Assembly (NCBI RefSeq): GCF_964204865.1
Contig: NC_135252.1
Coordinates: forward strand, 11,718,001 to 11,782,000
DNA length: 64,000 nt
Direction of reading: 5' to 3'
Source of the DNA: Styela clava
Taxonomy: Eukaryota
Below are positions 15,201 through 61,071 of this stretch, piece after piece. Each line of letters begins with the position of its first letter. Positions within the stretch are counted from its first letter, which is position 1. A model generated the notes under the pieces. The model did no database searches, was not told the origin of the DNA, and was given only the letters and a program-made list of their open reading frames with translations. Position numbers and translations under genes: made by a program.

Positions 15201-18200
15201 GCTGCAAATTGAAGCTGACTGTAAGTGATTATTTTGCTCTATATCGAGGGAAATTTTAAAATGGCTGTTGAAATTTGATAACTTTTTAGGTCAACTAATT
15301 CAAATATGATCAATAAGGGTTAAAATGGGCGGATTCGAGCTGCGGTTCATGATGAAATTTCAGTTCAATCCAGAATTCGTATAAATGTTTAGATTCAGCT
15401 AGAGTTCATAAATTTCAATTCAATTTATTGGACTGTTTGCGCTCGCTTGACAAATTCACAATCTCCCATTTAGAATTCAATTACTAAGAAATAAAGATAA
15501 CTAAAGTCGTGTTCTATTCATACATCAAGTCTTTGCTATAATTATTAGTGTGCGCCAATTGTGAGGTAGAGTGGGAGCAATGGAGTGAGTGCGTTGATAA
15601 TTACAGAGAGCGATCTCAAGTCATACTTGTGGAACAAGTAGGAGCAGGAAGCCCATGTCCAGACTTGGAATTTGAAACCCAAGGTAAATCACTTTATAAT
15701 CGTTTGTTTCGCATTTGGCGTTCATAAATGAACATTATGGTTGTTTTTTCTGCATACATCTAATCAAAAATCATACATATCTGTTGAATATAGAGACATG
15801 CGCCACCAACGAATTTTTCAGTACTCTCCAAGTCTTCAAATATACTGATTTCTTCAATTCTGTCATGATATTTTGGTCTTTATCTCCGATGAAATTTCAT
15901 TGAATATAGTGGAAATAATAGTCGATCTATCTCCGATTGTTTGATAGAAAACGCATACTCCAAAATTTATATATATGCGTACATTTGCAGAATGCGCTAA
16001 CTGCGAAGTCGAATGGTCAGAGTGGAGCGAATGTGGAAATGGAAAAAGAAGTCGAACACAGAATATTGTTGTATCAGGGTACGGAGGAGGAAATCCATGC
16101 CCAGTTTTGCAGGATGAAGAGGAAGGTGGGTACAAAGTTTTATTAACCTGGGGCTCGTACTAATGTCACTAATAGAAAAATAACAGAATTTTAATTCGTC
16201 GTATATTTTTTTGAAATAAAGATTTCACCATGATCACTTTCACTTCAAATGAAAATATATTTATTGTAATTTCAGACTGTGTCGACTGCGTTGTGGATTG
16301 GAGAGAATGGTCAAAATGCGAAAGTGGTTCACGAATACGGGAAATGTACATCAAAGTAGCCCACGTTGGCTACGGAGCGGAATGTCCACCCTTGGACGCA
16401 CAACAGGAAGGTACATAATTTCACAATCATATAAAAACTGATGGTTTTAGGAAAAGTTTAGGTTGTGTACTTAAGAACTTCATCACTTCACTAAATTATG
16501 AATAAGCATTTTCGATCGAAAAATATTCGACATATTCCATCATTTTTGCAATTCTTATTGCAGTTTGTGCAAATTGCGAAGTTGATTGGTGGGAATGGAG
16601 TGAATGTAGCAACAACATGAGATCGAGAAGACAATATGTTGCTGTTGAGGCATTCGGTGGGGGAGAATCATGTCCTGAATTAGAAACGGAAGAGGAAGGT
16701 TTGTTCGATATTTATTGGTAATGGTAACCCTCAAAATTTGGACTTTTAATCAATATAATCTTTGCTATTTTTAACAATTTTAAGAGTGATATCTTTAGAT
16801 CTACAGCCAAAGAAACCAAGTTCAAATATAGCTTGTTCACCCAAATATTTATTACACAAATTTTATTAGCTTGCATTGACTGTGTTGTTGAATGGGGACC
16901 ATGGACTGATTGCTTCGGTGAATTAAGGACAAGGAGGCAGGAAATAGTTGTTCCTCTTGTTGGAGCTGGAAGAGAATGTCCACCACTAGAATCTGAGACT
17001 GAAGGTATTCATGTGGTTTCGTATTCAAGAAATAAGTGTTCGGCAGTTGTAAATCAATACCTGCTGAGCAAAAATCTAATTTTTAATTGCGGTATGATAG
17101 CTTCTTCAATTGAATGTTGCTTTGTTTCATCAACGACATGAATTTTATTCGGATAATGGAGCTTCATTGCTTATATTCCTAAGCATGGGTTTCCAAGCTA
17201 ATATAAGTTAATTTTTACTTAATATCTCCAATAACCGACTCGCAGCCATTAAAAGTTTATTATTATGATGCAATAAACTAAATGGTATTTAGCGAGTGAT
17301 GAGAGTACACAGTCTAAAAATCTTCAATTGACTAACTTCTGGCTGAACGTATGTCCTTTGCTATCCGATTCCCCAGATCTCGAAGTTCCAACAATGGGAA
17401 CGCGAATAAGGGTTTTTTACGTTTCATACGTTCAGGTTCGAAAACAAGATATCGTCTGTTTCTGTTTGATTTTTTTTTTAAACGCTCGAATTTGTACATA
17501 TTATATTTAGTACAAATCTTTAATTTCTCGTGTTTATGTCAGTCATTCCATTATGGCGTGTAGGATTTATTCATATAATTTATGTAGTAACATTCGTTTG
17601 ATATAATACGCTAGCTTGCATCGTTCCTGGATCCAAAAAAGCACTGGAGAAAACTATTTGCAGATTTACTGAAGAAGTTCTTGGTTACAAGAAAAATCAT
17701 CGAAAGCGTGATCTTCTTCTGATTGGAGATGAATCAGGAAGTATTGGTTGGGTGAACTTTGCCAAGATCAAAGAAAACTTCAAAGTAAGTTAAATTGGAA
17801 GTAAGTTAAAGTAAGTAATTTGTGCTGACGTTTCATGACAGTGATCAAACTTGAAAATGTAATAGGGTTTGGCGCTGGAGCCCGGCTCTCCGGGGCCACT
17901 AGCTTACCATTCCTGATAAAGACTGTGAATTGAACGTTTGGTTCAGTTTATCAAACTTCTTTAGCTTTGTTGGAATTAAAAATGTATTTTATAATATTGT
18001 CACCAAGAATCTGCGATATGTTATCTATGATTGATTTCGACAAAAAATGTGAAGATAATAAATTCCTAGATTTTTTATTCCGTGAAATTTCGGCATGAGA
18101 TCCAAATCAAAATTAAGCAGTGCCAAGTCCCAAGGCGACTTTCCATGAATCGACTTTAGTGAATAACCTTGGTAGTTTACGAATCCAGCTTATTCAAAAA

Positions 18201-20221: not shown

Positions 20222-22229
20222 CTGAATAGCACAAAACTTGAATAAAAATCAACATTTGAACAAACTCTCCACGAACATCGAAAAATTGCTTTTTCTTGAC
20301 CCATATTATGGAAACCAGGGTTAATACTTTTTATTAATTTCATATAATATACCCACAGAGTGTTCAAACACCTGACATTTTTCACTTGTCTACATGGTAT
20401 ATGTTTCTTTAATTTTTCTCCATATATCAATCCTTACTATCTGCTCCAAAGCTAGTTGATCATGTACCTGAAAAAATGATTTTAGTTTGAAGTATGTATC
20501 ATCATCTTCCAACTATCTGCCTGGTAAGCTGAAATTTTAAGAGATTATTTGGCAAAAAATAATAAAATTAAAATGTAAAGCCTGACTAACAATAGTATTT
20601 CAATAAATTAATTTTCATACACAGCTCTTGGTTTCTGTGTAACGATTGTTGCCAAAAACGGACGACTAGAAAGATTAACAATTTATGGATGATATATCAT
20701 TTGTTAAAGTTAATTTTTTCCTGTATTTGGCAACCAGGTTCATGTTGTAGGCAATTATTGGGATTTATTGATACGCATATACATTCGTGAAGAATACCTT
20801 GGACTTAAAATGATTGTTTCCATATGTGCGTTGATCGTGCATTTGAACCGATCACACCAGCCGACTTGGTGAAAAATATGCTTCCAACACCCATGAATAG
20901 TCTTTTATTATTTGTAATATATAACAAATAAATCTTGATTGTGACTTTGTAATAACGTTTGGCAATAACTTGTCTATGAAAATTATGGACCAGACTGCAG
21001 TGGAGTAGTCTGAAAGTTATGCGCTGCATTTTGACTGGAGATATACCGGTGGACGAAATCTTTTTTGTTCGACAACGATCAAATTCAATCCACCAATTTT
21101 GAATATATATATGTTATGTATGATTCAACTATCACAACCATCCGGCTTCACACTTTGCAAAATTTGTATTTGTTTTTGTCATATTGAACAGTTTGTTACT
21201 AATGTGTTTGTTTTCACAATATCCGTCTCATCAGTGTAAATTTCACCATCTTCAATAAACTGCTTTGCTGTATGTATATTCTATCGTGTCCGTGGCAAGC
21301 TCATGAATAGTAGAAAAGTAGAAAGTAGAAGAAGTTGAAGTTAGGTTGCATGCGGAATGATGACTGTCAACTACTTTACCTGATACTATAAATGGAAAGC
21401 TGAAGTTCAGTTTGGAGACGAAAATATGCGTCAGGTGGTGAACTCGTGGACATAACTGTAAAATATTTTATTTTGCTTTACTATATTTCTTTTTGCATAT
21501 ACAAAATGTATTTTCCAAAAAAAATCATTTAATCATTGTTTATTTATTATCGTTTGACAAAAATATTTTAATTACATATCGCATACATACAAACTAAAAG
21601 TACAAAAAACAACAGATTCAACATTTTTAGAAAATTACATAATACTTTAAGCCGCCGTTTTATGGTATGATCTATTAGACTGAGGTTTTCAAAAGCTGAT
21701 TATCGTTTAAAAATATTAAACAAATGAAATATATCTGAATATTTCGTTTTTTTGTGGTAATTCACGTACATGCTTTACACGTTATCACGCATATTTGTCA
21801 CATTTCTGACGCACACAATTGTTATTTTTCTGCAGTGATGTCAATATTGATAAATTGAACAATGGAAGCATTTAATAGTGTGATAAACATTCTTTACTAA
21901 TGCACTTATTGAACTAGAGACGCGTATAAAACTAAAAAATCATTGCGCAAGAAAGTTGTATTCCTACTGACTTCTATCTAAGTGTACATCTGCCAAATGT
22001 TTTAAAAACTACCGTCGATTCGTACACTTCTCAATATAAAATTCATCCTACGACACCCTCTGCACTTTGAAGTGATGATTATTCGACCAACGTGTTAAAA
22101 GTTGGAATACATTAGCTCAAATATTCAAGATTATTCCACCATTAGAAATGACGAGTTTTTGCATTGTTCGAAGCCTTACACGTGTACGAATTTTGATGTC
22201 AAAGTTTCAGTAATATATACAAGATTTTC

Positions 22230-22339
22230 GGACCTCCAGAAGTATGTGCACCAAGATGACGCACAACCTGAACACAGTATGTGTACCAGGTTAGGATTCA
22301 GGTTGTGCGCCATCTTGGTGCACATACTTCTGGAGCGCC
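22230..22339. mobile_element. 110-bp hairpin MITE with 8-bp TSD (GG..CC termini, Merlin-like)
   Basis: Arms CTCCAGAAGTATGTGCACCAAGATGACGCACAACCTGAA / TTCAGGTTGTGCGCCATCTTGGTGCACATACTTCTGGAG. Perfect TSD AGATTTTC at 22222-22229 and 22340-22347. Confidence 0.85.
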
Positions 22340-22401
22340 AGATTTTCACTCTTACCGTGCCCATTTTTGTGCTACACATTTTGTTACAATATACTATATG
22401 A

Positions 22402-23569
22402 CAGGGGTGGGCAACCCCTGGCACGAGTGCCAAACTTGGCACGCGTGCCCATTTATTCGGCACGGGAGCGAGGCCTCAGAAACGAGATTATTCTCCTTCA
22501 GATAAAAAATTTCAAGACTTTGAATTACCTGATGAAAGGTGTTCGTTCATTTATTATCGTTTTTTTAACAATCCGCTATTTATTTGAACCCTTTTTGTCC
22601 TTTCGTGACATATGGCTACAAAGAAATATATTACGACGTAACAAATGAGAGAAGTTTTGAGAAGAAATTTTGTTGAGAAGAGCGCAGCATTCTTTTGGCT
22701 ACATTCTTAGTTGGTCTGTGACACCCTTTTTCTTCATTTCTGCTTGATTTATGAAATTGTACAGCTGATGTTGGTTAGACTTACTTGATAACTTACTGTT
22801 ATAAATTGATTACGAAAGAAATATAAGCGATTGTGCGCGGCAGTGTGGCCCATCGTGCTAAGCGTTAGGAATACGCTTGCCCCCGAACCTCTGATTACTC
22901 TGCGTGGGTTCGCAGGTTTGAATCCCATGATAGTTATGTGCAAGAGGATTGCTGGACTCCTCGCTGCCGTATGGTGGTTCACGTAACCGCTGGTCGGTTA
23001 CGGCTTCTTCCATAATTAAGTCCATGCTTCCGAAAACAAATAACTAACTAATCCCATACCCGACATGGAATAGTAACCGGACGAGAGGCCATGGTTCGCC
23101 ATATGGTTAAGCCGTTTTATCGGATAAATATGTAAATCCTATCCTATCGATTAAGGAAGGGGATACAAGAGAAAAGTGCAGAAAACGAACTATCGCGTGA
23201 TTGGAATGCCATTCTCTTATTTCGTGTCCTAAAATCTTTGCAACTGCATTACTCTTCATGTTTTCATGTACATAATGCTTGTGAATCTTTGTTCTCAGTT
23301 ATGAACTTTAGTAGGACTCGTAACAGGTGTAGCCTGAAAGATGAAACCTGTAGTTTTTCTCACTCATATAGAATAAGAAAAATAATCAAATCTATTTGTC
23401 AGACTGATATAGTGAATCTGACTATACGTATTTAAAAGGTTTATTATTGTGTATTTTTGCTTTAAAAATAGCAAAGCATTGTTTTTAATTTTGGTCAGCA
23501 CGCGTAAGAATTTCTTCGTTAAATTTACACGATTTTGACTCGCGATACGAAAAAGGTTGCCCACCCCTG
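22402..23569. mobile_element. Non-autonomous hAT element containing a SINE
   Basis: TIR CAGGGGTGGGCAACC / GGTTGCCCACCCCTG, a degenerate 8-bp TSD CTATATGA / CAATAGGA, and subterminal GGCACG repeats. Confidence 0.85.
22838..23148 (+). mobile_element. tRNA-derived SINE, full-length copy
   Basis: A-box-like TGGCCCATCGTG and B-box-like GGTTTGAATCCC. The body is shared with three other copies in the window, and the tail is (TCCTA)n. Confidence 0.82.
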
Positions 23570-23607
23570 CAATAGGATAAATGATAGGATAGTGTAGACG
23601 AACACTC

Positions 23608-23916
23608 GGTGGCGTGGCGCACCGTGTTACATGTTGGAAATTACGGTTGCCATCGTACATAAGGTTACTCTGCGTGGGTTCCAATACCGTTAGGGATAAT
23701 CATGTGAGATAGATGGATGGTGTCGTCGCACCCTAATGGCTCACCTCACCGCTGGTCGGTTAGGCTTCCTCTACTATCATATCCATGCTTCTAAAAACAA
23801 ATAACTGGCTAAGTATTTTCCATAACCGACATCGACTGGTGCCCGGACGAGAGGCCTGGGTTCGCCATATAATTAAGCCGTCTTAGTGGCTTTCTCTCTC
23901 TTAAAATCCTATCCTA
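23608..23916 (+). mobile_element. tRNA-derived SINE, second diverged copy
   Basis: Same order of blocks: TGGCGCACCGTG, TTACTCTGCGTGGGTTC, ACCGCTGGTCGGTTA, CCATGCTTCTAAAAACAAATAACT, GGACGAGAGGCC, and tail AAATCCTATCCTA. Confidence 0.8.
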
Positions 23917-26900
23917 ATTCCCAAAATTTTAAATTCTAACCTTTTCACTCATTTCACACTTCGATACACATTTCACTTTTCCGCGTTTATGATTCATTTC
24001 AGATATGTTGTTTTAGATTAGATAAAAATTTTGAGCAGTGAATCTCATTGTCAATGAACTTATGTAAATTCAGATAAGATACAAAATCAACGAAGTTTTT
24101 CAAGTATTTCGCAACATTTTAAAAATCTTTATTTTAGACTATTTTTCGCTTTGCTGGCGCAAAGTCAAAGAAGACCTTCGTTCTGTGTAACGTTTACATA
24201 GCCCTGGAAATTCTACGCATTTATAATATATATATATATTACAGTACAGTACATAAAATTTGAATTCGATGTGTTATTCAAATGTTATACAGAAAATGTT
24301 CTTTGGTTGCTCTAACAAATAAAAGAAATTCTAAATATTCAGCAGAATATAAAAACGTAAACTTTCATCGAGCTCGCCATTTTGTTTTTGTCACCTCTCA
24401 ATGAATTTTCATTTTTCTCGTATATAAATATATATACATCCAAACAACATCATAAACATTTATAACCTATTCAATACATAGTATTCATACTATTTACATT
24501 CGTTTGGATTATCGTACGACCAAAGGCTTCAGACACTCTCAAAAAGTTAATGAGATTTCAGCCTGAACTTTGTTTGGCTCTTCAATGTTTTGAGAAATTA
24601 TGAACATTAATTCGCTAAAACAGATGTAATGATGAGCGGCAAATGCTTTAAACATTCCAGATAAAAAGATAAAGATGAATAAGATTCAAATACCAAATGA
24701 TAAGTGCAAATCAGTGTTCGATTGTGCTATATGCGTGCGAACGAGTGATTCGCGGGGTATCTTACATTTCACGCTTCATTATGTAGAATCAGAAACATCA
24801 GTAATAAAAAGCACAATTTTCATAGTCATCTATCTATTAATATTTTAAAAAATCTTCAAAACAACAATTTGTTACCATATAGTTGAGTACTTGAAGTTCT
24901 TGGTCAAGAACATTGTTAAATCGTTGCATTATTTTCCGTGGTGTTTTGCTAAATGTAAGTTTCATATTTCCTTGTACCACTTCCATTTCCAAATTTGAAA
25001 AATGAATCGTTAATTAAATAATTGTTTACGGCTGTGATATATATTCAAATACAATATAAGCTAAAGAAACTTCTTTTGTTGCTAAATTCCATATGCAAGT
25101 TATTTCAAACTTTTCAGGTGAATTTCAAGGGTCTACCTATCGCATTAATAGAATGGCATTCATCCGTCCGGATTGTATGAAAACCCATTTTATCGAGTGT
25201 TGGTTGTTTTATATGTTGTTTATTGTAAATTGATAATATCGGCTGCTCTTTTTTTACAAAACGACATTGTTAGTTTCCGGTCGAAAACAGGTGCTCGAAT
25301 TATGGTGAAAAAAAAATATCTAAGCATCTAAATATAGCTGTAACAATAAACTTGATTAACATCATGGCACCAGAAAAAAATGTATAATCAATAATATTTG
25401 CGATTTCTTAAATGTCAGGTATCAAATAATAGAATGTGATGCATACCACGAAATATTTCATTGCTTTTGATTATTTCCATACCCACCCAGATTACGTTAG
25501 ACTAAGAAAGGACTGAAAATGAAATAAACAACTTTCGGAAAAAATTTAGCATTTATAAAGATGTCCTTCTACAGACTTAGATTAGAATACACACATATAT
25601 ATATAGCGTGAGATATATAGAAGTTAGCAAAAAATTTTAATTGGATTCTACTTTGATCAGATTGTTACTCGACAAATATGCAGAATTATGCACGTAAAAT
25701 TACAGAGTTTTTAAACTGTCTGCCATACTAACCACATATTTGATTTCGATAAAAATACATCTTTGGTAATCTCAATACTTATATAGGTGACGTAGACGTT
25801 CTTATAGAAATTTGTCATGATATACAAAATGTGGTCCTCCAACATAAACTAACACATTTTCTCTTAACTGCCATTTAATTTGCCGTTTTCAATAAACAAA
25901 ATATTACGTTGTAAAAACATCCTCTCAAGTTTCTCAATCAATCAATAGTGTTGTCAAACAGGCTGTTAAATCCAGTTCTGCGTCTAGCAGTATCAATCAC
26001 TAAGCGGGCGTACGGCCTATTCAAATAGCAACCACCAGGCGGCGTTTACACAATGACTATTTGCCCCGTAACGCGCAGAATCAATACAATTTTTTTAATT
26101 TCATTCGTTTGGAGTTGTTTCTGATAAAGCCTCAGTATATTTGACATTTTTTTTCATTCCTGAAAGATGTTCTGTGAAACAAAAAATGTAATAACAAAAA
26201 ATTAGGTTTTGTGGTTAACTGAAGAAAAAAATGTAAAGAATTTATTCAAAACTCATTGAAATGTGAAGGACGGTGAAAAAAATATGCAATTAATATTGGA
26301 AAATATGACTTTCTATAATATCTAATTTTTTGTGATTTATTGGTAATGAATTCATTTATTTTTTGATGCAAAACGAAAGAATTTTAACAAAAAAGGTTGG
26401 AGGTTGAAAAAATTGAATGATTATGTTCTGTGTGTATTAGTTACATCGAAATGTTGTAAAGCGCTAAACAAAACTAGGATGAAAAATAAAAAGGTCTCCA
26501 TGCTAGTACGGCGACGAACTAACCAATAATTTATAAGTAATATGGTATTCAATCATTTAATTAATCGATTTCGAAGTTTCGGTGTGACTTTGATCAACTT
26601 CGATCTGTGAAGTAAGTTTCGAATCAACAACTTTACATCATCGCGGTTGTAGTTTCGGGTTAGGGTTATTTTGATGATTTACAAATTTCACAACAATGTA
26701 TAATTAGCTATGATTCTCGTTAGAAAGAGTTATGTAATGGGCAACCAAATTTGTTTGCTGATTTCCAGAAGATCTTATACAACAAACATAAATATAGGTT
26801 AATACATGTATTATTTGTCGTATGGAAACTGGAACATTTGAAATCCCGAAGTCAAGGATGAATCAAAACGATTTTTATGTAAAATCCAAGTAATCCAAAG

Positions 26901-35181: not shown

Positions 35182-36281
35182 ATGGATATCACGATATTTA
35201 TAAGGATTATTATAATTGCGATTACGTTCACATTCGTCACTTCAAGCCCGGTTCTTCAAGTAAGTTTTTTTTAATTATTTTTGGTGTTTTGTGTTTAATT
35301 AGTTACGATCATTAAAACAAATGTTTACAAAGCATTATGCAGTACAATGACATAAGGTTTTAATTACGTTAAAAATACCAAATGATGAGTTACTAAAACA
35401 AAACTAGTCGACTGAAGATATTTCACATTGCATACCTAATAAAAACATTGTTCTAATGACACACCTCTTTTTCAGCATAAATCTTCAGGGATGCCACATT
35501 TATTGCGCCGACTCCTTCACAGCTATAATACTATGCCAAAATCTGGGGAAGTGAGTCCGGAATATTATGTATCGCCTCCAAACGTTATGAGAAGATACCG
35601 AAATTACGATTGGCAATATTACGATGGCAGAAGACAACACAAAAGGCAATCGGGATTAACACCCAGCCGATCAGGAAAAAGGTGAATACATTTTTATTGC
35701 CTTATTCCAAATTTGTTTTATAAATTGTTTATCGCACGAATTGTAAATCCATTGAGTTTATTTGGGAAACTGTAATAATAGAAGTCAAAAGACCTGCGGT
35801 CTAGTATCCACGCCCTCTAACTTACTTACATTATACATTTTACGACTACACACTTTGTGAGCACCCTAGTAAATGGATATAAAATATTATGAGTTGACAT
35901 CTATTACTGAATTATACGATCCAAATTTATTTCCACAAAATATCTGTTTAATTGATTTATTTCCAACGAGCGAAACTATATTTTCTAAAATCACTAAAAT
36001 GCGCGAAGTATAGCTTTAAATGTTATATGAAATCTTATGCAGAATTATGATTTTCACTAACCCTAGCAAAAATATTAGAAATAATCTCAAACTTTCAAAT
36101 ACCTTTCACTATTACAGTATTCATTAAATTTTATTTTTTGTTTAGAACGGTAATATGTGCAAAGAACAAGCGCGGTCGATGTGTCGCAAAGTGTGGATTC
36201 GGAGCACCTTTGGATCAAATATCGAAGAATATGTTTTTTGGTTGCAGACCAACGTTAACATTCCGGCATCAGCGAATATAA
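35182..36281 (+). CDS. Secreted peptide precursor 1, natriuretic-peptide/osteocrin-like (139 aa, 3 exons)
   Basis: Exons 35182-35259 (MDITIFIRIIIIAITFTFVTSSPVLQ, signal peptide; donor GTAAGT), 35476-35681 (pro-region with RR/GRR/KR/GKR sites; phase-2 donor GTGAAT) and 36146-36281 (RTVICAKNKRGRCVAKCGFGAPLDQISKNMFFGCRPTLTFRHQRI*). TATA box upstream and AATAAA at 36959. Confidence 0.85.
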
Positions 36282-39212
36282 TTATGGAAATAACATATTT
36301 TAGCCTTGCTAAAGACGAAAAATTATATTTGCACAATTGGGCGTATGACATGCACAATACACCCCAATCTTTATACATTTCTTACATTTTCTGTGCCGGA
36401 ATACTGTGAACCAACGAAACTGTTCATTAATACATATCAACATCGTCGTTACTACGGTGAATATAATATGTACTGTGCCCACGAATGTTTTAAACTTTAC
36501 TGAAAGCTACAAGAAATCCTGAAAGTACTTTTGATGAAAATTTGTGGAGTGCATCTGGTCAATCACAGATTATCGTCGGTTTGAACCAGAAAATACCGAA
36601 TTGTAATAACATCAATGTGAAGTTTTTGCATATTTGTTGCAGTAATATTATTTATGCGGTAGTAATATCGATGCAATGCAATATACGGTTTTATTTTCAC
36701 TGTTACATTGTATTTTTCCTATCTTAAACGATACAAATTTTTTTTATTATTTATTGAAATCATCAACGATTTCGCAAAGCCTTAAGTGCTTATACATTCG
36801 TGCTTTTGAATGCTGTTAGAAAGGCATCATAAAAATTCATAATAAGCTATATATTATAGTTAAAGAACGAAAATCGTTTGGTGATAAGTTTGCTTGCTTG
36901 CGTATTGTCTTCAACATTACACTGTAAATTTATAAACAATTAACGTTATTTGTTAAACAATAAATATATATGAAACAATACAAAATGGTGACTTTCATGT
37001 TTTATAATTGATCATCCGCGACTGAAGTAAGTGAGGGAGGCACTGGCATAGTCGGTGTATAGGGGTAGTAGATATATGGGGGGTAAAAGCATTTCAATCC
37101 AAGAAAGATGCCAGCCTAATACATCTGCGATAAAAAGAATTCGAAACCCAATTCTTTTCTCCCAAGCGGATGTAGCGTCTTGCTTAATGGCATTGCGGCT
37201 TCACATCAAATCATTTTACGTTATGAAAATAAATTCAATCATTTTAATGCCCCGGAGGTTGCCATTCACTGTCTGCCAGCAAATGCGGATTCTATTAATA
37301 GTTATCGGTAAAACATACAACCGAAATTCGATGCCATTGCATTTCACATAAAACAACTGTCCACATTCAAAAGCATTCAACAGCCTACCTATATTGAAAT
37401 GAAAGGTGATAGTTTTGTTGATACAGAGAGACGTGCGTGCACCTTGATATAGTATGAAACAACGTTGTTGTAGACGCGAACCCAAACAATAGTGAGGCGA
37501 GAGTAGGACTGTTCAATTATTAAGCGAACCTCAAATATTCGTACGTGATCTCCCACGCAAATGTTGCAGATGCCCCACTTCTTCAAACTTTTTTAAGACA
37601 ACTAAAGATCAAATGTATACTGCGGACAAGGAGATGGACAAGTCGAGCACTCTATTTTTAGGCTTAAGCGTTACCTGATACGTAATAAACAAAATCTTTT
37701 TTGATAACTTTTTATTAACTAACTACAACCTGTACACCAATGGACTTGGAATTCAATTACAATATCCCATATTGCTAAAGGTAAACTGCCTACGTGCAAG
37801 TTAGCCGAGTGAAAATGGCTACTTTTTTCGTGCATTCTGAAAGCAAAACGGTGCATCTTGGTATTTACAATAACTGTAAACATATAGGTCAACGATTAGT
37901 ATTACGTTGGATGTTTATAAAAACGATATTTTGATATATTTATATCTTGTATTTACATATTTTGAATGTCTCATTGTGTTTACAGGTTTCAATGTGCACG
38001 AATAAAAGTTCTTCAACGTATGTCCCACTACGCGTTATTGAGTAAATTCATACGTATAGCGTCTCATTATCTCCGTCCTCGGGACACACTGAAGTTTTTC
38101 TTTCAACAGGTCATTTTTTAATTCGAAACGCTTAGCACCATGGAGTAAAAAAAGAAGACCATCCCAACACTTCATTTGTATCATCAAATAAAATGTTAAG
38201 AAAACGCTTCTAGTGAAGTCATTGAAGAAACAGTGACTTTTCGGTTGTTGGGGCAACCTATGCGCACTAAATACGTTGTCCGCTAATGTGTCGCTATAAG
38301 GATTCTACAACTATGTGGTCGCATATTATAATGAATAAAAACTATAATATACTAAACAACACTCAAGTCGAAAACAAAAGCTAGCGTGACACGGCATTTG
38401 TACATCGATTCATAAAATGTAGTAATTAGCTTCTTATCGCTAAGAAATCTAGTGAAAAATTCGAATTTGCTTGGCATTGAGCGAAATTGTGTTCTATTGT
38501 GTTTATGAAACAAATAAATTGGTGGAGAACAGGGCGTAGCATAACCATCGTAAATATTTTCTTCTTGGAAATTCTGCATACTTGCGCAACCGTGGAATCG
38601 GTCATTTTGTCATGAAACTAATCCTTTAAACTGCCAAACTGCCTAGACTGAAAACATCTATAATTTCTTAAATATTTTTATTGAAAATGATAAAACAAAA
38701 AATGAAGAAAATTATGTAGCGAATGCGCGGATACATAGGCATTAAATGAGAGCATAATTACAAACCATCGAGAAACTGGAATATCATAAGCGGAAGGTAA
38801 GAAACCGTTTTTGCCTGAACTAAGTCCTGCCATGGGGGCCAGGGACTGAGAAAATGTGAATACTTGGATTAACTACCAAGATCGGTGCATTTAAGTTAGC
38901 GAATCATTGCCATGGTTTAGCAAAAGTGTTTTTATTTGTAAAATAAAAAATAAATATATCTATAAATAAACAGATAAATATCACAGAAGGAATACAATAT
39001 TTCGAATGAATAGAATAAGATTACAATTAAATATTTAGTAGGATGTAATTTTCATACAAGTACTAAAAATAAATCCAAAGAACAGTGCCTGTTTTATACG
39101 CAAGCTGATACGCATCTTTTTTATTGTGCATTATTTGATGCATGTATGTAAATCAGCCTGGGCTAACGCGTTACAGTGAAGTTTATTTGCGGACGTTTCT
39201 CGTTTTCCTCTT

Positions 39213-41722
39213 CTAAACATGAGGCAGTTTCCTCGTTCTACATCCAAATCCAGTGCTGAATGAGATGCGATCAAGAGGCACATTAAATGGACACGTCGTG
39301 ATGCGACATTTTCCTTTCCTCTGACATGAAAGTCGAGCCATCTTTCGACCACTGTAAATAGAATATCGGCATTTAGAAACTCAAATTTTTTTTTTCTGGT
39401 ACCTACAAAAAGCAATGTAAACAAAAGCATCCATTTGTTTCCTCGACTATTTTCAATTTTTGTTACTCGTGTCGATACGAGAAAAACAAGCGGTTATATG
39501 GTATATCGGTGCATAGCAAAAACAGCTTATGTGTGATGATAGATTATAAAAGTCATGTTATAAACAGACTTTGTTCAATCTCTAATGAACTGGACCTCTA
39601 ATCACCCAGCAAAACCCTTCAGGGCAATTAAAAATTGTCTCGACATATTTGGAGTAAAAATGACAAGCGTCCAACATTACAGCACGCGATGACCTGGTTG
39701 ACAGCAAACGTGTTTTTCGATGATCGTCGATTAGATCTATCAAGTGTATTTTCTTGTCTTGTTTATCGCATAAACGATTTGTGGCATTATGTCTCTTTAG
39801 ACAAAATTCAAAAATTGAAATTTTATGGATGAAATGTGCAGATTGCGTGCGATTGCCCACACGCTTACCACTTATGTCACAAAGATCAATTGCGGGATAA
39901 TTAGTCACAAAAATAGGTCCATGAAATCGCGTAATGATGATTATTAAAATTGGTTGCATTTTTCAAAAAACGGATCATAAACTAGGCGATTAATGCGCTT
40001 GTCGTATATAGACTTTTCCAAGTGGCTCGGAAAACTTTTCACTTTCTATATAAACAGACAAATTTGAAAGCAATGGAAGATAATTGGAATCGCAGATGTA
40101 ATAAAAAAAATGATCAAGAAACAATAAGTAATGCTCCATCAGAATGCATGTCCAGCGAATCAGTTACACGAGAGATTTTCAATTTGAATATATGGAAACT
40201 AGACTATTAGTTTTAAAAATAATTCTAAATGTATGAAATAAGCGAGTAATACGAGCGAAGGAAAGCACAAAAGTATTAGTACAACGATATATTAAAGTAA
40301 CACAAAACTGAATTTAAATTCAATAGAACCTCCATCTTACTTTCTCAATCCTCTCTTTACGTGATGTTTGCTCTTAAGTCTTCGACTTTCTTCTGAAGTT
40401 ATGGACTTATCTTCGAAAATACTTCTGAAAAACTCTGGAAAAAAAAATACATTGAAGAAAATGTCGATGATAAGCAAACCGTAAACTGGAACATTATTTT
40501 TATATATGTTTTTTCGTTTAAATTATAAATTTAATTTTATAGGTAATCAGACCATTCAGATGATCATACCATTCTTGGTAAATTATATTACGAACGAAAG
40601 AACGAACTTATGGTTACTGTTGAACATCATCAATTTAAAGCAAATTAAGTTCGTGAATAATATAGGACTCTTATTGTCTTGAAAAATCCATTTAGTAGTT
40701 GTCCATTCAGTTCATTCCATTTAGTCCATTTAGTATAGTTGTATCAACAAATATGCAGTTGCAGCTTATAGAGGAGAAAACGCTGCAATGATTGGATTCG
40801 AGTGAAATCGTCGGGATTTCCTCGTTTAGAATGAAATTATAACTGGATTAAATTCTAAATATATATAAATATTTACCTTTGTGAGGTACAAGAGCTTCGA
40901 GCATTTTTAAATCTGATAAAAATCCTTGAAATATTATGATGTATTCATCTGGATCCCCAGAATGTTCATTAATTTCAAATTTTCGTAAATTTTCAAATTC
41001 TTCTGGCAAAGTTGAAGCAAGATGGCGACTGCTTGTTGGTAACGAACTCACGAGTGTTGAAATCTGACAAAAATTTAGAATAATTCTCAACAATTCATTC
41101 TTAATGGCTAAAGTATTAAATCGATTTGGAAACTTAGTTGTAAACAGTGCGATTGGCATTAGTAAAAAAGCGAAATTTTTCTCTGTGTTTTCAACGACCC
41201 GTCATCTTTCTGTATTTTCGATGGAAAGGGAGAATGGCATATGAATTTGATTAATGACTTTTCTATAAAACATGGTTTCCACTATTTATAGAAAAATATG
41301 GTATATAATAATAACCGAATTTTAACTCATTAAGCACTAACGAGCTTTCGCGGTGTATCAGCATTCTCTCATATCACCAAATGTAAAGACAGTCATTTTA
41401 CTCATGTCCAGCAAAATCTACTTGGTACACCAAACTACAATGTACTTAGTTTCAAAAATATACATCGAGCCGTGTGTATAGTTATCTACTGAAGAGTATT
41501 GTACGTCAAAACTCTTCACGTTTGCTGTTATTCTCGTCCCGTCTTTCAGAAATATATTTAATTGTGGATATAAAATATCTCCTCTTTCTTATATTTATCA
41601 ATATATATACATGTATTATCCAGTATTCCTCTCACCTGAAGTATTAGAACGAAGTATATTGATGAAATCATACAAGAGTATGATATAGTTGCTCGAAAAC
41701 ATATAACGCTTGATATCTTCAT
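39213..41722 (-). CDS. Secreted peptide precursor 2, natriuretic-peptide-like (168 aa, 4 exons)
   Basis: Exons 41722-41636 (MKISSVICFRATISYSCMISSIYFVLILQ; donor GTGAGA), 41063-40877 (ISTLVSSLPTSSRH...VPHK; donor GTAAAT), 40434-40341 (EFFRS...KHHVKRGLR; phase-2 donor GTAAGA) and 39351-39213 (NGRKMARLSCQRKGKCRITTCPFNVPLDRISFSTGFGCRTRKLPHV*). All phases are compatible. Minus-strand AATAAA at ~39120-39125. Confidence 0.87.
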
Positions 41723-47791: not shown

Positions 47792-48417
47792 GTTGATGGG
47801 CGATAGATTTATTCAATTACTGTTTTCTGTTTTTTTGGCCTTTGTCTCTGTCTGTCCAAGAGGGGGATAAAGCTTGAACGCTTCAACAAACATTGGTTTG
47901 CTTGGGATAAGTCTGACCAAAGCTGCGTCACCAGATTTTAAATTTTTTTTAATCAGCTTTCAGTATCTTATGTCCATCCTTTCTTTCAAATCAGCAAACT
48001 TGAACGCAATTTGAGCTGCATGCCAATAAAGCGCACGGGGTACATAGCCACGACAAATTTGTCCAGCACAGTTCAAGACTGTGACTTGAAATTTGAAATC
48101 CGAAACTTCCTGAGCGGGAATTCATTTTGTTAATGCCATCTACATTCCCTCTACGGATATCCTTTACAAATACATTTTTGACAATAAATCCGACACTATC
48201 ACCACGCACAGACTTGTGATGCATTTCCACAGATTCACCTTCGATACTGATGTTGATCGGGGCGAACGACACGTATCACAGTTCCAATACCTCAATCTTA
48301 AAAACATCTTGAAGAGCCAGACAAAGAGGCTTGTCAGTCGGCCGAAATGGTGCTCAATATTGTCCAAGGCTTCGGAAAGACATTTTGCTTTATCATAACC
48401 ACTTGAGCATTCATATA

Positions 48418-49710
48418 TAGGACTTGCAGGGGTCACGTGACTTTGTTTACTGGACGGTAAAAAAAACAAAAACGTCCATTTGGCTCCTGTCAGTTGCAAG
48501 TCGGATTATACGTTTCCGTTTTGTTTGGCTGTTGAAAATGGGTATTTCGTATTGTTTCGTTGGCTGTACGTATAGTATACTCTAGAGTCTAGACAACGAA
48601 ATTGATCTTCAGTTATATTCCACTGTTTTCAAAAGATCCGGAACGTCGCGCAATGTGGATATCATCTATTGTCGGGACTGCTTGGTGTCAAGTCCAGAAT
48701 TCATCTCGCTTGTGTTTCACTATTTGCGGACAGCACTTCGTTGATGGTGAGTGATAATGTGCCGTTATCAATTTTCTTTAAATATTCATAAGCTCCCTCA
48801 TTTCAATTGAAAGCAGACGACAAACTACTGTTATTGGTAGGCCTAGGCGTAGGCCTACTTGCAGACTTGAACCACTGAGGGTGGTTCACACGACCGCTGA
48901 TCGGTTACGACCATCCCCCACCATCCAAGTCCATGCTTCTGAAAACAAATAACTGGCCAACTAATCCCAACATAGAATGGTAATCGAGAGACGAGAGACT
49001 GTGGTTCGCTATATGATTTAGTTAATGCAATAGTCACTTGATTCGCACAGTACATCAATTTGTCTAATGTTTTGATTCCATAGGCAGGAGGTTGCGGATC
49101 GGTGCTGCTCAGATGGGATATTTTTTCTTATAAATGCACGTGTTCCACATGAATCCATCGTGCTCAGATTCGACTGTTTTCAAGGTCTGAAGGCTCCAAC
49201 TGCTTAATTTTATCGGTACACAAGAGAATTTTCAGTCAGTTGGAGTCCCTAACATCAAAATATCTATATGCAAGGATAAGGGTGCAAGGTGCAACATCGC
49301 CTACCAATAACAGTAGTTTGTCATCTGCTTTCCATTGGAATGAGGGAGCTTATGAATGTTCAAAGAAATCGATAACGGCACATTATCATTCACCATCAAC
49401 GAAGTGCTGTCCGCAAACAATGAAACACAAGCGAGATGACTTCTAGACTTGAAACCAAGCAGTCCTGCCCATAGATGATATCCACATTGCGCGACGGATC
49501 CGGATCTTTTGAAAACAGTGGAATATAACTGAAGATCCATTTCGTTGTCTATAATATACGTACAGCCAACGTAACAATACGAAATAACCATTTTCAACAG
49601 CCAAACAAAACGGAAACCTATAATCCGACTTGCAACTGACAGGAGCCAAATGGACGATTTTGTTTTTTTGCCGTCCAGTAAACAAAGTCACGTGACCCGT
49701 GCGAGTCCTC
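48418..49710. mobile_element. Non-autonomous DNA element with ~420-bp terminal inverted repeats carrying a decayed THAP domain
   Basis: 48418-48840 is the reverse complement of ~49300-49710. It is TA-flanked, and EF1A homology resumes on both sides. The arms translate, with frameshifts, to YCFVGCT...SVIFHCF.KDPERRAMWISS...SRLC. Confidence 0.85.
48878..49022 (+). mobile_element. SINE fragment inside the long-TIR element
   Basis: GGTGGTTCAC..ACCGCTG.TCGGTTACG..CCATGCTTCTGAAAACAAATAACT..GGTTCGCTATATG. Confidence 0.78.
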
Positions 49711-51149
49711 TATTCGGCCCATTTAAACCAAGGTCAGATTGCTCAGGCATTTTGTCTCCAAGCCACCAAGAGTTTGTCACAAAAGTAATGTTTTTGTGGT
49801 TATGAGGGCGACAGATGTGTTTTTCCTTACCGAAACCTCTAAAAATAACGTTAAATTGTTATACTATAAGTGTCATCAAAAATGAAATCTTGTTTTATAA
49901 TTAACGTTCATCTAACTGTGTATTTGTTGTTGAGGCACGCTAAATCGCCGATTGGAAGTTCGGAGCCGGATACTGGCACATTTGGTCAGTGATTGTGTAT
50001 TCGCCTAGTCAATGAGAATATATATAATTGATTTGCGTTCTGTAGCGCCAGGAGCATATCATGACGTGCTGACAAAGTGAGTGAACATCAGTTCTGTCCA
50101 TTGTTGTCATGAAGCTTGATTATGTCTCAATATTTCTTGCCTGTCCGGTTTTTCTTAGTCACAGCACCAATGCAACTAAATTAAGGTTGTCATGTGGTTC
50201 AATTTAAATTCCTAATGCTACGTTTCTTTTATATGTGGTCAGTACAGTTATTGTGTATGAAACCCTAATCAAACATAGTATAGCGTTTATCTTTGAAATT
50301 AGGTTCATGGAAAATACAGTACCGGTACAAAGGTTTTAGGCTAGCTTGGTTTATTACAGTAGGCTACTTTCAGTGAAATTTTATCTGGTCTTTGTGAATA
50401 TTGTGCGCGCTAAACTCGAAATATGTGGAAAAATCAAAACAAACTGTTTATTATGGCTTTTCGTCAACTGTTGGTAGAGCCTTGCTTCTTTATTGAAAAA
50501 CAAAATCATAGTGGATTCGAAGGGCGAATATAGTTATATTTGAAATTATACCTTAAGTTAAGGGAGCTTGATATTTATGACTGAACGCCGTATACATCAT
50601 GTTGTATAGAAAGTACAGTTACGCAATGATTACCGAAAGCATCCAGTGAGAAATTCATGTAAGGTTTTTTCTAGGTGTGGCATGATTAAGATTTGACAGC
50701 GACATATTTGTTTGGTTTTTCAAGTCATTTTGGTATATGATATGCTGTAAATAAAATTTTGTAAATTTGTCTTGAAAAAATATGATATTCGATGAACATC
50801 TATGTTCCGGTCGAACCTAAGATGATATTACAAATAAGGTGATATAATGAATTGTGAGCTTGAAAATAATTTATTAGTCGTGATATGATGAAGTCGGATC
50901 AGGTCACTGTGTTTCACAAACAACGAAACGCTTTTGCGCCACAGAACACCCTTGACTTGGCTCGCAACTCAGGGTTTAGTTCAGAGAGTTCTACCCAACA
51001 ATGCTTACACGTGAGAAATCTGCCTCGATGACGAGTCTAGCTTGATGAGAATGTCCTCATTATTTTTTTTGTAGAGGAGTCAAGATTCCGGATTGATGAT
51101 TTGTTGATATGGCAACTCTCGCACGTGTAATGGGTGGTTGGAGTCTTAT

Positions 51150-55575: not shown

Positions 55576-58500
55576 TCACGATGCATCTAACCCAGTTTCT
55601 GAGGTCGAAAGACACTCATCAAAATAATTGTCCGTAAATCTCAGCATTTGTTGTAGTGCGCTCAGTGCCAGAGCATCTACCCAAGGATCAAGTTCGATTT
55701 CATGAGTGTAGTTTTTCACCGGCAAAATAAAACTCACGGGAACACCAATTTTTATGCTTGTCTGCAGTAATAAAATAAATACAAATTCTTTTGTTATTAC
55801 AAGAAGTAATGTAATCTGGTATGAGTAAAGATCAAGCATTCGCTCATTTACAATGTAGAATTGAAAAGACAAAAAGTCCGTTTCAAGATACCACCAAGTT
55901 CGGATATCTACAAAATATTCATAATCACCAAGCGTCAAATTTACCTCTATAAACCAGACACGTTTTATCACCTTGCTGGGATTGAAAAGATATGATCACT
56001 CGAATAAAAAAAAATTATTTCATTTTTTCAATTCATAAACTGTATTTATTAACTACTTGGAATCTCATATTGCTGAAAAAATACTACATTTTTCGGTAAA
56101 GTATAAAATGTTGTTAGATCAGAATATTTAGAAATAAATTAGGACTAAATACTCACCTGGGCTACAATATTTTGTATAACCGAACTTCGATATACCATCG
56201 AAACATTGGATGCTGTTTGGCTGCATGCCTTATCAATTTTAGTCAGCAGAATAATCATTGGTATACCTTGAAGTTTAATTATATATATAAGAAGCGAGAA
56301 TAGGTACGATCTACGATTGTTCCGTCCCTACTAACTTATTATGGTAAGGGACGTGGGATATCTGCGTGCGAAAAAGTGGCGTATGTTTCTAACACATTCA
56401 ATGCATTTTTAACATTACCGTACATTTTTACTCGTGTCAATGGTCAATGATAACTTGCAATTATAGTTGAAATAAGATATTCCAGGCGCTGTCGTCTTTG
56501 TTGCCATTAAAAAACAGGTATTACCTGATTTGACGTGATGTTTACGAAACACAAAATAATAAATACTAGATAAATTTGTGTTAGTCGTTGCAGGGCAATT
56601 ATATCAGTTTCGGAGATCAAAACGGTAATATAGTAGTAGTTAAAAATAGTACATCCAATAAGGAATGATATTGAAACATCACATATATATGTGTTTTAAA
56701 ACTTAATTCAAAAACTCATTTAGTCAATATGTTAGAGTGATTGGTATTGAAAAAAACGTTTTGATAAAATAAGCATAAATTCGTATTTATAATTTCATAA
56801 AATAATCAACATCCATTATAACGCAAAAATAATCACAAAATACTTCTTAATTTAGCTATAATCAAAAAGCGTACAATCTTTGCAAGGATACCGAAATTTG
56901 AAAAATCCTTTTTTACCTCTAGAGGTTATTTTCCCCCTCATGTCCGAAATTTTATGCAAAAGCCCTTCTCCCATGTTGGATATAGAATTTGCGTCCAGAA
57001 CAATAACGCAGCAATGTATCTTGTCTGATAACTTGGGCAATTTTATATAACCGTGCATTTCTTGAGAAATATTCCCTTTGTTGTCAAACTGTAATGAAAG
57101 ACAGATCTTGAAAATGTAATTTTCTAATTTTCATCACCCAGCTTTTCCAGCAAATGTCTACAAATGATAAACGCATTTCTTAATTTTAATACAAATCACG
57201 AAGTAAAGAAAAGTAGAGTAACTAGATGTAAATTCTTGTGCGCATTAGTGGATAATTCCCTTTTCGAAGCAGAGATTCAGACTGGCTACTGCAGGAATTT
57301 TTCTGGCATCTTATTACTGGGCAGTATACATGTCAACTTAATGATGTATTCACGTACTAAGCAAAATGTCAAAGAGCTTTTAAAATAAGCTTGTATTTAC
57401 ACAAAATATCAATTATTTATCGAGTTTGAAATTACGGCAATTTGAGTATAATTCAGAAGTGTGGATGCATATTTTTACCTCACGCACATCATAAATATTG
57501 CAAGAATGCCAATAACGCATATCCTGGGTAAAAATACATTGCAAAAATTTTTTAATTCCCTATCATTTCATGGGTCACACAAAATATTCATAAGAATATT
57601 ATAACATATATCAAATTACTGCCAATGTCAGCATATTACTGATTGCTGAAATGATCAAATTAAAAGCTGTGAGTTTTGCATAGAAAATGAAACATTATAA
57701 TAGGCCTACTACATGTACTATTTGTAGTGATCATAAAATGAGTATTATGCTCAGTAGAAGAGATTAGTATTTCGAGAAATAAAATGGAAAATGTGGAAAC
57801 TCCCATCATTGCCAAAGTTTGTGATTGCATCACAACAAAGTTATATCACAAAATGAGTTTGACTCATATATACCCGGCTAGGTTTTGACTCAATTCAGAA
57901 TAGCCCGAGGTCGGGTTATAAACATATACTCATTGCGGACTGCGTCTTAGTAAAAAAAAATGGCCAGGCTACGTTCACATTGTAAATCTTCCACCATTAG
58001 CGTCATATTGTTTTTTACAGTCAAAAGGAAAGTTTCTTGCAAACTTTTTGAAATGTCACCAAGAACGTTTTCTTTTGCAAATGTGATGTCTTCACCCAAC
58101 AGTTCGGTATTTATTACCAGGTGCCCACTAAGAATGAGGTCCATCGGCAAAAGATTGCATAGCTCAGCTTATGTTATAGACGCTACCACAGGTTATGGCT
58201 ATAAAAAATCTTATATATTGCATGGGATATTGTGGAATTCCGTTCAACCGAACTTTTCCTGATTGCGTTGAATTTGATCAGCATACCTACCCCAAATGAA
58301 AAACAAACGATACAAACTTGGTGATTTTCGGGTACGTGTCCATCCAGGATGTATGGCAATTCCGATGGATCGAATCCTTGTTTTCTTTCTTCTTCAAGAC
58401 CCATTGTGTCGACAATACGAAAATTAAGGACTTTTCCCTCTCTACCGTTACGAATTTGGTATGCTCGTAACTACAAGTAAATAACAATATTGATATCTTT

Positions 58501-61071
58501 CAAATCACGATTAAATCTTATATTGCGTTTTTAAAAAAATAGAATCGTTGTTTTGTCGAACACAATGACTCAAGCCTTTATGGAGGGACCACACGCACAG
58601 GTAAATTAAAAATATCATCAAAGCCATAAAATGGTGTGAAATGCTATTCCAAATATGACCTTCAAAAAACGTTTTGATACGGGTGTATAAGAAATCTGAT
58701 GTTGCGAATAAAGACAAGCGACCAAGTCTTCTTCTAATATTAACTAGGCGGTGCGTTCCGGGAAAACATTTTTAACTGTCAATTTACAAACCTTCATTTT
58801 ATGTATCTTATTGTATAAATTTGTGGATACACCAACGTTCCTACGCATACAATGTATTCGACTCAGACTTTTAGTCCTGAGGAGTTAACGCCAATTTGAA
58901 GCAGCATTCCAACATGCTTATTAAAGCATTCTTATACGCTTTGCATATGGAAGAGCTAGTTTCTATTAGCTATGATATACCAATCAACAACTTATATAAT
59001 CAATAAAATCAATACAAAACACCACCAGTTACGGTTTACCTTGGTAGTTATAGACGCCTCATCTAATGGACTTCCGACCGCAGCTTGCGCAGTCACGTGA
59101 TTGCGAAAAATTGAGTTGATCGTGTTGAAATATGACGACTTCCCGACATTGACTGGACCAAGCAACAATATACGGGCAGCCGACACGCCCACTTGATTCA
59201 GGGGTTTATACTCTCGAATCGATTCAATCAACGTAGATCTCGTCCTGAAGGATTATTACAATAAAAACTTTGTATTTATATAATTTTGAACGTAGCCACT
59301 GCTCATACTTCGTCACATATGAAAGTAAAAGACAAACCAGCCCTAGTATTCCAACAGCGAATAGAATACGATTGTCATTTTATATGTGTGTCAATTTCAT
59401 ACGGGCTATAGCTTAGTCGTAACGGTTAGGTCAGCTCTATCAATTCGGTTTTGGTCTGAGAATCCTATTCTATACTACCCCAAATCCAATGACTAACATT
59501 GAGCTTTTAATCATGGATTGCCTGAGCCACCACGCGGTAGCAAGCGCACTCGTCATTTTGCAGCACATACACGATTCACAGTTTAGTGAATGAAACTCAT
59601 GATCATGACATTCTGCTGCAGTAATTGAAAGGTATTCGGTTGGTTAATTTGATAATCCTAGTTCTTATAAATTTTATAGATCTAATCTCAGATATCATTG
59701 TTGCCACGTTTCAACATGCATGATAAAGTTTATCAAATTAAAACAACATACTGTTCATCCCAGGATAAAGTTCTCCATTCTGTCTTCATCAATGATCCTT
59801 GAGAAAGCACTAAAAATAAATATTTCTTGTTTGACAATGCATTAATCATTCAATCAATTATATCACTAACATTTTTAGCTGGTGAGAAAGAAGCAAAGCT
59901 AACATTTTTATAACATAAACCACAAATAGCACAGTTATTTATGTCTCAAATTCCCTTTTTATTATAATACCTCATGGCGACATAAACAGAATAATCTTAG
60001 GCCTGCGTGGGGGAAGTACATAACATGCTATTTGACTTGATGCAGACGATAGTGTACAGTTTGGACGGTACTTACTCGTGTTCATTTTGGCATTGATAGC
60101 TGCACTTGCTGCTGAAACAATAAGCTTTCAATTACAAACAAGCAAATGTATATAGCATTTTAAGCACATTAAACGACGAGAGCCAGCCGTGCATCATAGC
60201 GATCTGGTTGCTTTCTCAGCAGAACATTGTTTGATCACAACACAAAAGGTGTTTTATTCTTAGCATAGTTTGCCAAATTGATAGCATATTAATTTAACAA
60301 TTTATAGGCTCTGCAGCGTTCTGATGTCGATCCGAACTAATAGAATTAAAGATAATTTTTTTTTAAACTAGAACATGTGGAGTACATATTTAAGGATGTT
60401 AAAGCTATTAGAGTCAGCAAATGTTGACATATCATGACTCTGAAGTTAAATGACACTTTATGTTCGTTTACGCAAAATTGATATGCAGTGCAAAGCAAAC
60501 AAAACAAGAATATTCGATATTACAAATGATTAAACAAATCGCGCATATATGTATCATGATATTAAATGAAAAAGTGATTTCAATTACCATAATATTATAT
60601 AAGTCATGTAATATATAAGTCAGCTAGTCAATTATGGCAATAAAATGTATCGTTATGTCATACAGTGCTAGTCCGCATTTGATTTGGGTTATCGTATTCT
60701 AGAAATTGCTATTCAGATATAAACTACTACACGGAAAGAAATAATACGGCTTGATTTTCAGAAGGAATGATTTCTAATTTCAACCCTAAAAATGACTAAT
60801 GATTTCGATGTGATGAACAACGTCATAAGTCAACTTGATATAGTTCGAATATATATATTTACGAATAAGCGCATAGTGCATGCATAATATGAAATAATAC
60901 AGCAAGCAATTTATGATGCAAAAAAGAATACATCTCCAGTACTAATAATGTTATCTAAATTCATAAATCTTGTTTAGTTTTCTCCAAAAAAATTAATACT
61001 TATACATATTCATATGTGCTTGCGTGTAGAAAATAAACGTAATACGTACCTTTACTTGCACCAGCACCCAT
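55576..61071 (-). CDS. IFI44-like: Interferon-induced protein 44 (IFI44/IFI44L)-like P-loop NTPase, 8 exons, 313 aa if it stops at 55576
   Basis: Exons 61071-61050 (MGAGASK), 60111-60076, 59809-59752 (EWRTLSW), 59244-59040 (RILLLGPVNVGKSSYFNTINSIF, P-loop), 58470-58318 (IVDTMGLEE..ILDGHVP), 57088-56917 (DKIHCCVIVLDA), 56266-56157 (GIPMIILLTKID) and 55761-55576 (PVKNYTHE). These are hallmark IFI44-family motifs and the phases are consistent. Confidence 0.92.

Follow-up and report, generated by a model that had tools for sequence, protein, structure and literature searches.

We analyzed a window of 64,000 nucleotides from the genome of the ascidian Styela clava (RefSeq assembly GCF_964204865.1, contig NC_135252.1, positions 11,718,001 to 11,782,000 of the forward strand) and found two tail-to-tail genes whose predicted products are secreted precursors ending in a cysteine-bounded ring that resembles the ring of the natriuretic peptides (NPs). 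Positions are given within this window unless another contig is named.

Two convergent genes for cysteine-ring precursors

The two genes were modeled by hand; their introns are GT-AG throughout, the reading frame stays open across the exon joins, and the two stop codons lie about 2.9 kb apart. Gene 1, on the forward strand, consists of three coding exons separated by two introns in phases 0 and 2, and its product has 139 residues. The first coding exon (35182..35259) contains the start codon and the predicted signal peptide and ends in ...VLQ before a phase-0 GT intron. The second (35476..35681) encodes the pro-region, in which LLRRLL, the acidic/aromatic stretch NYDWQYYD and the basic sites RR, GRR, KR and GKR were found, and ends in phase 2. 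The last coding exon (36146..36281, including the stop codon) encodes a basic peptide of 44 residues with a net charge of +8 and four cysteines in the arrangement C-x7-C-x3-C-x16-C, followed by a tail of 11 residues. The ring itself, CGFGAPLDQISKNMFFGC, comprises 18 residues and is located at 36192..36245. The first AATAAA on the 3' side of the stop codon (36959..36964, forward strand) may serve as the polyadenylation signal.

Gene 2, on the reverse strand, is divided into four coding exons by three introns in phases 0, 1 and 2, and its product has 168 residues. Its first coding exon (41636..41722) carries the start codon and a hydrophobic signal region and ends in ...ILQ before a phase-0 GT intron. 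The pro-region is spread over the second coding exon (40877..41063), which ends in phase 1, and the third (40341..40434), which contains RR and KR sites, is followed by a GTAAGA donor and ends in phase 2. The last coding exon (39213..39351, including the stop codon) encodes the C-terminal part of a basic peptide of about 49 residues with a net charge of +11 and the cysteine arrangement C-x5-C-x4-C-x16-C, followed by a tail of 8 residues. The ring of gene 2, CPFNVPLDRISFSTGFGC, is located at 39240..39293, again comprises 18 residues, and is the most NP-like of those described below. Three AATAAA sequences on the 3' side of the stop codon (38931..39187; TTTATT on the forward strand at 39182, 39120 and 38931) are possible polyadenylation signals. 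We also observed an open frame of 126 residues within intron 3 of gene 2 (39585-39962, reverse strand); it matched no Pfam family and probably does not code for protein.

The hand-joined models were letter-identical to two RefSeq proteins of Styela clava, XP_039267199.1 for gene 1 (LOC120342433; P0002) and XP_039268131.1 for gene 2 (LOC120343090; P0001), both of which are named only as "uncharacterized protein". This identity bore out an initial annotation of the window, made from its letters alone, which had proposed a tunicate-type gene cluster in an apparently invertebrate genome, with two spliced genes, each encoding a signal peptide, a pro-region, dibasic sites and a ring in the last exon; both rings lie exactly where it had placed them. 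The genes are not yet characterized; no paper describing them was found, and full-text literature searches on natriuretic peptides of tunicates, ascidians (Ciona, Styela clava) and amphioxus yielded no description of the family. The intron arrangement was reproduced in part. The first intron is in phase 0 in both genes and the intron preceding the ring exon is in the same phase in both, but the distance from the latter intron to the first cysteine differs, being 4 residues in gene 1 and 9 residues in gene 2. In each last exon, two more cysteines are present upstream of the ring.

An ascidian family defined by its C-terminal ring

HMMER was used to search 1.84 billion representative proteins exhaustively with a profile built from both ring exons, and five proteins were returned. 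In addition to the two Styela proteins, these included P0003, a complete frame of 144 residues on a Logan contig of 1290 nt (E 2e-10), and P0005, a protein of 151 residues from Clavelina lepadiformis (XP_076803533.1 / CAK8695089.1, "uncharacterized protein"; E 3.9e-4), which is an ascidian of a different order from Styela clava. Because the P0003 frame is complete on 1290 nt and the Styela orthologue has two introns, its contig is most simply regarded as a spliced transcript. The fifth match, P0004, a bacterial-looking repeat protein of 1532 residues, was dismissed as noise. A word-indexed protein search with the alignment of the four members returned only the same four proteins, and such a search with the 45-residue ring exon, restricted to a length range that leaves out complete precursors, returned none.

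Comparison of the four members revealed a common precursor plan, in which every protein is hydrophobic at its N-terminus, contains basic cleavage sites and has its ring 8-12 residues from the C-terminus. All four contain four cysteines in the pattern C-x5/7-C-x3/4-C-x16-C, after which a tail of 8-12 residues remains, and the ring conforms to C-x-F-[GN]-x-[PA]-[LI]-D-x-[IL]-S-x4-F-G-C. Across the four proteins, no substitution occurs at C, C, F, D, S, F, G and C. Pairwise identity was 44-78 % within the ring and 12-38 % within the pro-region. Since the ring is far better conserved than the pro-region, which is the usual pattern of bioactive peptides, it is presumably the active part of the precursor. 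When the ring exons were searched against the 377-Mb Styela clava genome, the two exons found only each other, so that exactly two copies are present. This mutual match, the relatives in two other species and the permutation result given below all indicate more than a chance resemblance.

We considered whether the gene models could be annotation artefacts, with ring motifs that are chance, unexpressed open frames. The RefSeq models are themselves computational predictions, which leaves some room for this explanation. However, the introns are all canonical with the frame kept, the independent RefSeq models and the hand-built ones coincide, the ring is conserved in the paralogue and in the orthologues from Clavelina and P0003, and the whole frame of one of these orthologues, P0003, lies on a contig whose length suits a transcript. 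We therefore consider an artefact very improbable. Genes 1 and 2 are real paralogues that encode secreted pro-peptides with a predicted C-terminal disulfide ring and, judged from their sequences, they belong to a genuine, conserved and undescribed family of ascidian peptide hormones whose ring is NP-like but non-canonical.

Outside the ring, some features of the pro-regions are shared. In gene 1 (35590-35681), glycine is followed by basic pairs (YYDG-RR, SRSG-KR), and such sites could release short amidated peptides; residues ~85-101 of P0003 show a similar layout (YRG-RR, RPG-SRR). Additionally, gene 1 and P0003 have in common a helix of the LLRRLL type and the acidic/aromatic motif N-Y-[DE]-W-x-Y-x-D, which the Clavelina protein shares in part.

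The strong positive charge of the putative mature peptides, +8 to +11, together with their four cysteines, would also suit cationic, cysteine-stabilized peptides of host defense, that is, antimicrobial peptides and not hormones. Styela clava is known for antimicrobial peptides of its haemocytes, and an IFI44-like GTPase gene is located about 15 kb away. In contrast, the part of the family that is conserved is the ring, which is weakly charged, has a fixed motif and retains 44-56 % identity between two ascidian orders, while the basic loop and the tail vary. Antimicrobial peptides usually evolve fast and are expanded in copy number, whereas only two copies exist in this genome, and no Pfam defense family was matched. 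A defensive role thus appears unlikely, although less so than an error of annotation.

Likeness of the ring to natriuretic peptides

The ring was compared with 177,635 distinct PDB sequences. The profile of the two ring exons revealed NPs as its top three matches, namely BNP, BNP again and taipan TNP-c, with E-values of 0.02, 0.038 and 0.041, and the next match had an E-value of 0.5. BNP was also the first match of the four-member full-length profile (E 0.081), and the gene 2 exon alone retrieved BNP twice (best E 0.5) and TNP-c (E 0.9) among its six matches. For profile scoring and permutation, three short NP pieces were used, two taken from the PDB match alignments and the third being the CNP ring. 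The C-terminal four-member profile scored 21.2 bits against the BNP piece, which corresponds to an E-value of 0.0025 when scaled to the size of the PDB database. The ring-only profile reached 14.3 bits against the NP pieces, a score attained by none of 1000 column permutations (maximum 9.1 bits).

Upon alignment, the segment from Phe to the closing Cys matched the NP ring over 16 residues without a gap, and the pattern shared with NPs is F-x3-[LMI]-D-(R)-[IL]-x6-G-C; the spacing of the initial annotation, F-x3-[LI]-D-x-[IL]-x6-G-C in the Styela rings, is correct. The gene 2 ring is identical to the BNP ring at 10 of 17 positions and to the ring of its own paralogue at 10 of 18, and a hand count showed that each member is identical to at least one NP piece at 7-9 of the 16 positions between Phe and Cys. 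In particular, relative to the NP consensus C-F-G-x3-D-R-I-x4-G-L-G-C, F, D and G-C are invariant in the family, [LI] and [IL] occupy the two hydrophobic positions, and G follows F in three of the four members.

Several observations weigh against assigning the family to the NPs. Pfam ANP (PF00212; threshold 27 bits), which the initial annotation had proposed as a check, matched neither the exons nor any of the four proteins (hmmscan, E <= 10), and in a six-frame scan of the Styela clava genome with the same model the ring exons were not among the three places returned. Loop length differs as well; the ring is C-x16-C, or 18 residues, in all four members, since Cys and Phe are separated by one residue, whereas NPs are defined by a loop of 17 residues, C-x15-C (PMC12343078). 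Every member has four cysteines in the putative mature peptide instead of the NP-type two, only two of the four have the Arg of D-R-I, and F-G-C stands in place of the NP L-G-C. When the gene 1 exon, P0003 and P0005 were each searched alone against the PDB, no NP match was obtained, and the likeness is thus carried mostly by gene 2. The E-values against NPs all range from 0.0025 to 1, with 0.39 for the ring-only profile. No member from Ciona or amphioxus was found among the representative proteins at E <= 0.001. AlphaFold2 run on the four-row alignment was uninformative (pLDDT 51.5), and no disulfide pairing was deduced from it; likewise, the ESM Atlas yielded no usable feature match, and its structure matches were meaningless (pLDDT 0.42).

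Gene structure and gene order point in the same direction. Vertebrate NP genes encode the ring and most of the pro-region in a single exon and are not known to have an intron directly before the ring, whereas in both Styela genes an intron immediately precedes the ring exon. The order of the vertebrate NP locus is MTHFR-CLCN6-NPPA-NPPB-PLOD1-MFN2. In the Styela clava genome, the peptide gene pair is on contig C3, MTHFR on C4 and mitofusin on C6, so that neither gene is linked to the pair and no NPPA/NPPB-type synteny was found. The analogy to a linked NPPA/NPPB cluster, which had been drawn in the initial annotation along with a suggested comparison of synteny, is therefore positional only. 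Because tunicate genomes are heavily rearranged, the missing synteny is weak evidence.

The three places returned by the genome scan with Pfam ANP (C2:14929914, C3:12707317 and C17:11602168) were rejected as chance matches; they carry half-motifs of the form CFGxK[LM]D that lack ring closure or sit in a frame of 17 residues. The best of them (C2:14929914-14929952, forward strand; 19.6 bits, E 0.65) reads CFGDKLDRLAC, then a stop, within such a 17-residue frame.

Taken as a whole, the sequence comparisons suggest a likeness to NPs that is real but borderline. Pure chance is an unlikely source of it because the borderline match falls on the type of gene that would be expected, namely a duplicated gene, conserved across ascidian orders, for a secreted prohormone that carries its ring at the C-terminus. 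In a sequence this short, common ancestry and convergence on a receptor-binding motif cannot be separated. The broader claim of the initial annotation, a tunicate NP ligand, accordingly held in one respect, as NPs are the best PDB match to the ring, but not in the Pfam match, the ring length or the cysteine number.

These departures are the main grounds for a different explanation, in which the two genes belong to a tunicate-specific family of disulfide-loop hormones or neuropeptides without NP ancestry, with a ring likeness that arose by convergence or by chance on a short motif and perhaps with a receptor of another class. The missing Pfam ANP match, the 18-residue ring, the four cysteines, borderline matches driven by gene 2, an intron placement unlike that of vertebrate NP genes and the lack of synteny would all fit it, and NP-like motifs of non-vertebrates have been held to be probably convergent (PMC6878697). 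It accounts less well for the finding that, among all the PDB sequences, NPs were the top three for the ring-exon profile, or for a gapless 16-residue match whose shared positions (F, [LMI]-D, I/L and G-C) are those that each family conserves. As in NPs, the ring also lies at the C-terminus of the prohormone, and Styela clava, a member of the vertebrates' sister group, possesses guanylyl cyclases of the ANF_receptor type. We regard an origin outside the NP lineage as the strongest of the alternatives, though less likely than a relation to NPs. Homology of the family to NPs, as judged from these short alignments, is plausible, and we consider the question about evenly balanced.

Candidate receptors, proposed mode of action and relation to known peptides

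At least two genes of the Styela clava genome combine ANF_receptor and Guanylate_cyc exons, at C9:5804133-5810256 (forward strand) and C9:11039125-11049485 (reverse strand), and these are candidate receptors. An ectodomain exon of the cyclase at 5.80 Mb had NPR-C as its best PDB match, although this match was weak (E 0.034). The N-terminal ectodomain exon of the cyclase at 11.04 Mb encodes a signal peptide but gave no PDB match.

The neighbors of the gene pair within the window are a Sushi/TSP1 gene and the IFI44-like GTPase gene. The former (9605-17138, forward strand), a multi-exon gene located upstream of the pair, contains Sushi (CCP) repeats, which Pfam matched with E-values of 4.5e-7 and 7.5e-9, as well as spondin-like TSP1 repeats that scored under the Pfam cut-off. 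At ~56855-59252 (reverse strand), P-loop GTPase exons with a GPVNVGKSS motif and a weak MMR_HSR1 match (E 0.0028) are consistent with an IFI44-like gene. The window also contains a run of 129 N (5521-5649), which is an assembly gap or masked sequence, and two peaks of GC content, 0.40 and 0.41 at 22000-24000 and 48000-50000 compared with ~0.33 elsewhere, where frames overlap on both strands and which may be repeat elements.

The single most likely reading of the pair, which we hold with about even confidence, is that it represents a tunicate branch of the NP lineage, or at least a ligand that would act in an NP-like manner. A ligand related to NPs that signals through a cyclase is favored because tunicates and vertebrates are sister groups and because the genome encodes ANF_receptor-type guanylyl cyclases, one of them with the weak NPR-C match. 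In this mechanism, the signal peptide would be removed from each prepro-hormone, and the pro-region would be cleaved at basic residues, namely at the GKR that precedes T96 in gene 1 and the VKR that precedes G120 in gene 2. A very basic C-terminal peptide of 44-49 residues with two disulfides would thereby be released. Its last loop, the conserved and presumably receptor-binding part, mirrors the vertebrate NP sequence F-G-x-x-[LM]-D-R-I-x4-G-L-G-C from Phe to Cys. The secreted hormone or neuropeptide might then act on a membrane guanylyl cyclase by binding its ANF_receptor-type ectodomain, and thereby raise the level of cGMP.

A stronger version of this reading can be formulated, in which the two genes are true tunicate orthologues of the gene ancestral to ANP, BNP and CNP. 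The NP system would then be at least as old as the common ancestor of tunicates and vertebrates, the ancestral ligand may have been a bicyclic peptide with four cysteines that was shortened in vertebrates by its first loop and one residue of the ring, and the orphan NPR-type cyclases of tunicates would have the Styela peptides as endogenous ligands. We put this version forward tentatively, as slightly less probable than the general reading.

Other ligands provide useful points of reference. Guanylin and uroguanylin are likewise small secreted peptides with four cysteines, located at the C-terminus of a prohormone, and act on a membrane guanylyl cyclase, but their cysteines are tightly spaced, with loops within 15 residues, and we see no sequence similarity. 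Osteocrin/musclin contains NP-like motifs and binds NPR-C, and it has no disulfide ring. Compared with the vertebrate NPs (ANP/BNP/CNP, TNP-c), the Styela family shares a secreted prepro-hormone, here predicted, with the active ring at the C-terminus, and a short basic tail after the ring as in BNP. It differs from them in an additional upstream cysteine pair, which probably forms a basic loop, and in scoring below the Pfam ANP threshold.

NP-like rings have also been claimed outside vertebrates. NP-like peptides have been reported from the venoms of invertebrates, namely scorpion, centipede, leech and box jellyfish (PMC12343078), and Mendel et al. 2025 reported canonical C-x15-C peptides in venom transcriptomes of jellyfish, leech and centipede (PMC12343078). 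Grandchamp et al. 2019 stated that NPs were known only from vertebrates; their own candidates from Ciona, Oikopleura and echinoderms were single-exon, followed a loose C-x12-18-C pattern and were judged mutually unrelated (PMC6878697). In contrast to the venom peptides and these candidates, the Styela family consists of spliced prohormones with four cysteines and is conserved across ascidian orders. Martinez-Morales et al. 2007 counted Nppc and the ANP domain among the novelties of vertebrates (PMC1868935), and receptor-type guanylyl cyclases are considered much older than NPs, with no known ligands in non-vertebrate chordates (PMC6878697).

The two unnamed Styela clava genes can thus be tested as candidates for the relatives of NPs that are missing outside vertebrates. 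Their peptides could be synthesized and tried on tunicate and human receptor cyclases, which would make it possible to ask at the bench whether the ligand is younger than the receptor. If homology fails, the genes would still represent an undescribed, conserved family of ascidian peptide hormones. If it is true, the origin of the NP system would predate the vertebrate genome duplications, and a bicyclic ancestral form would be suggested.

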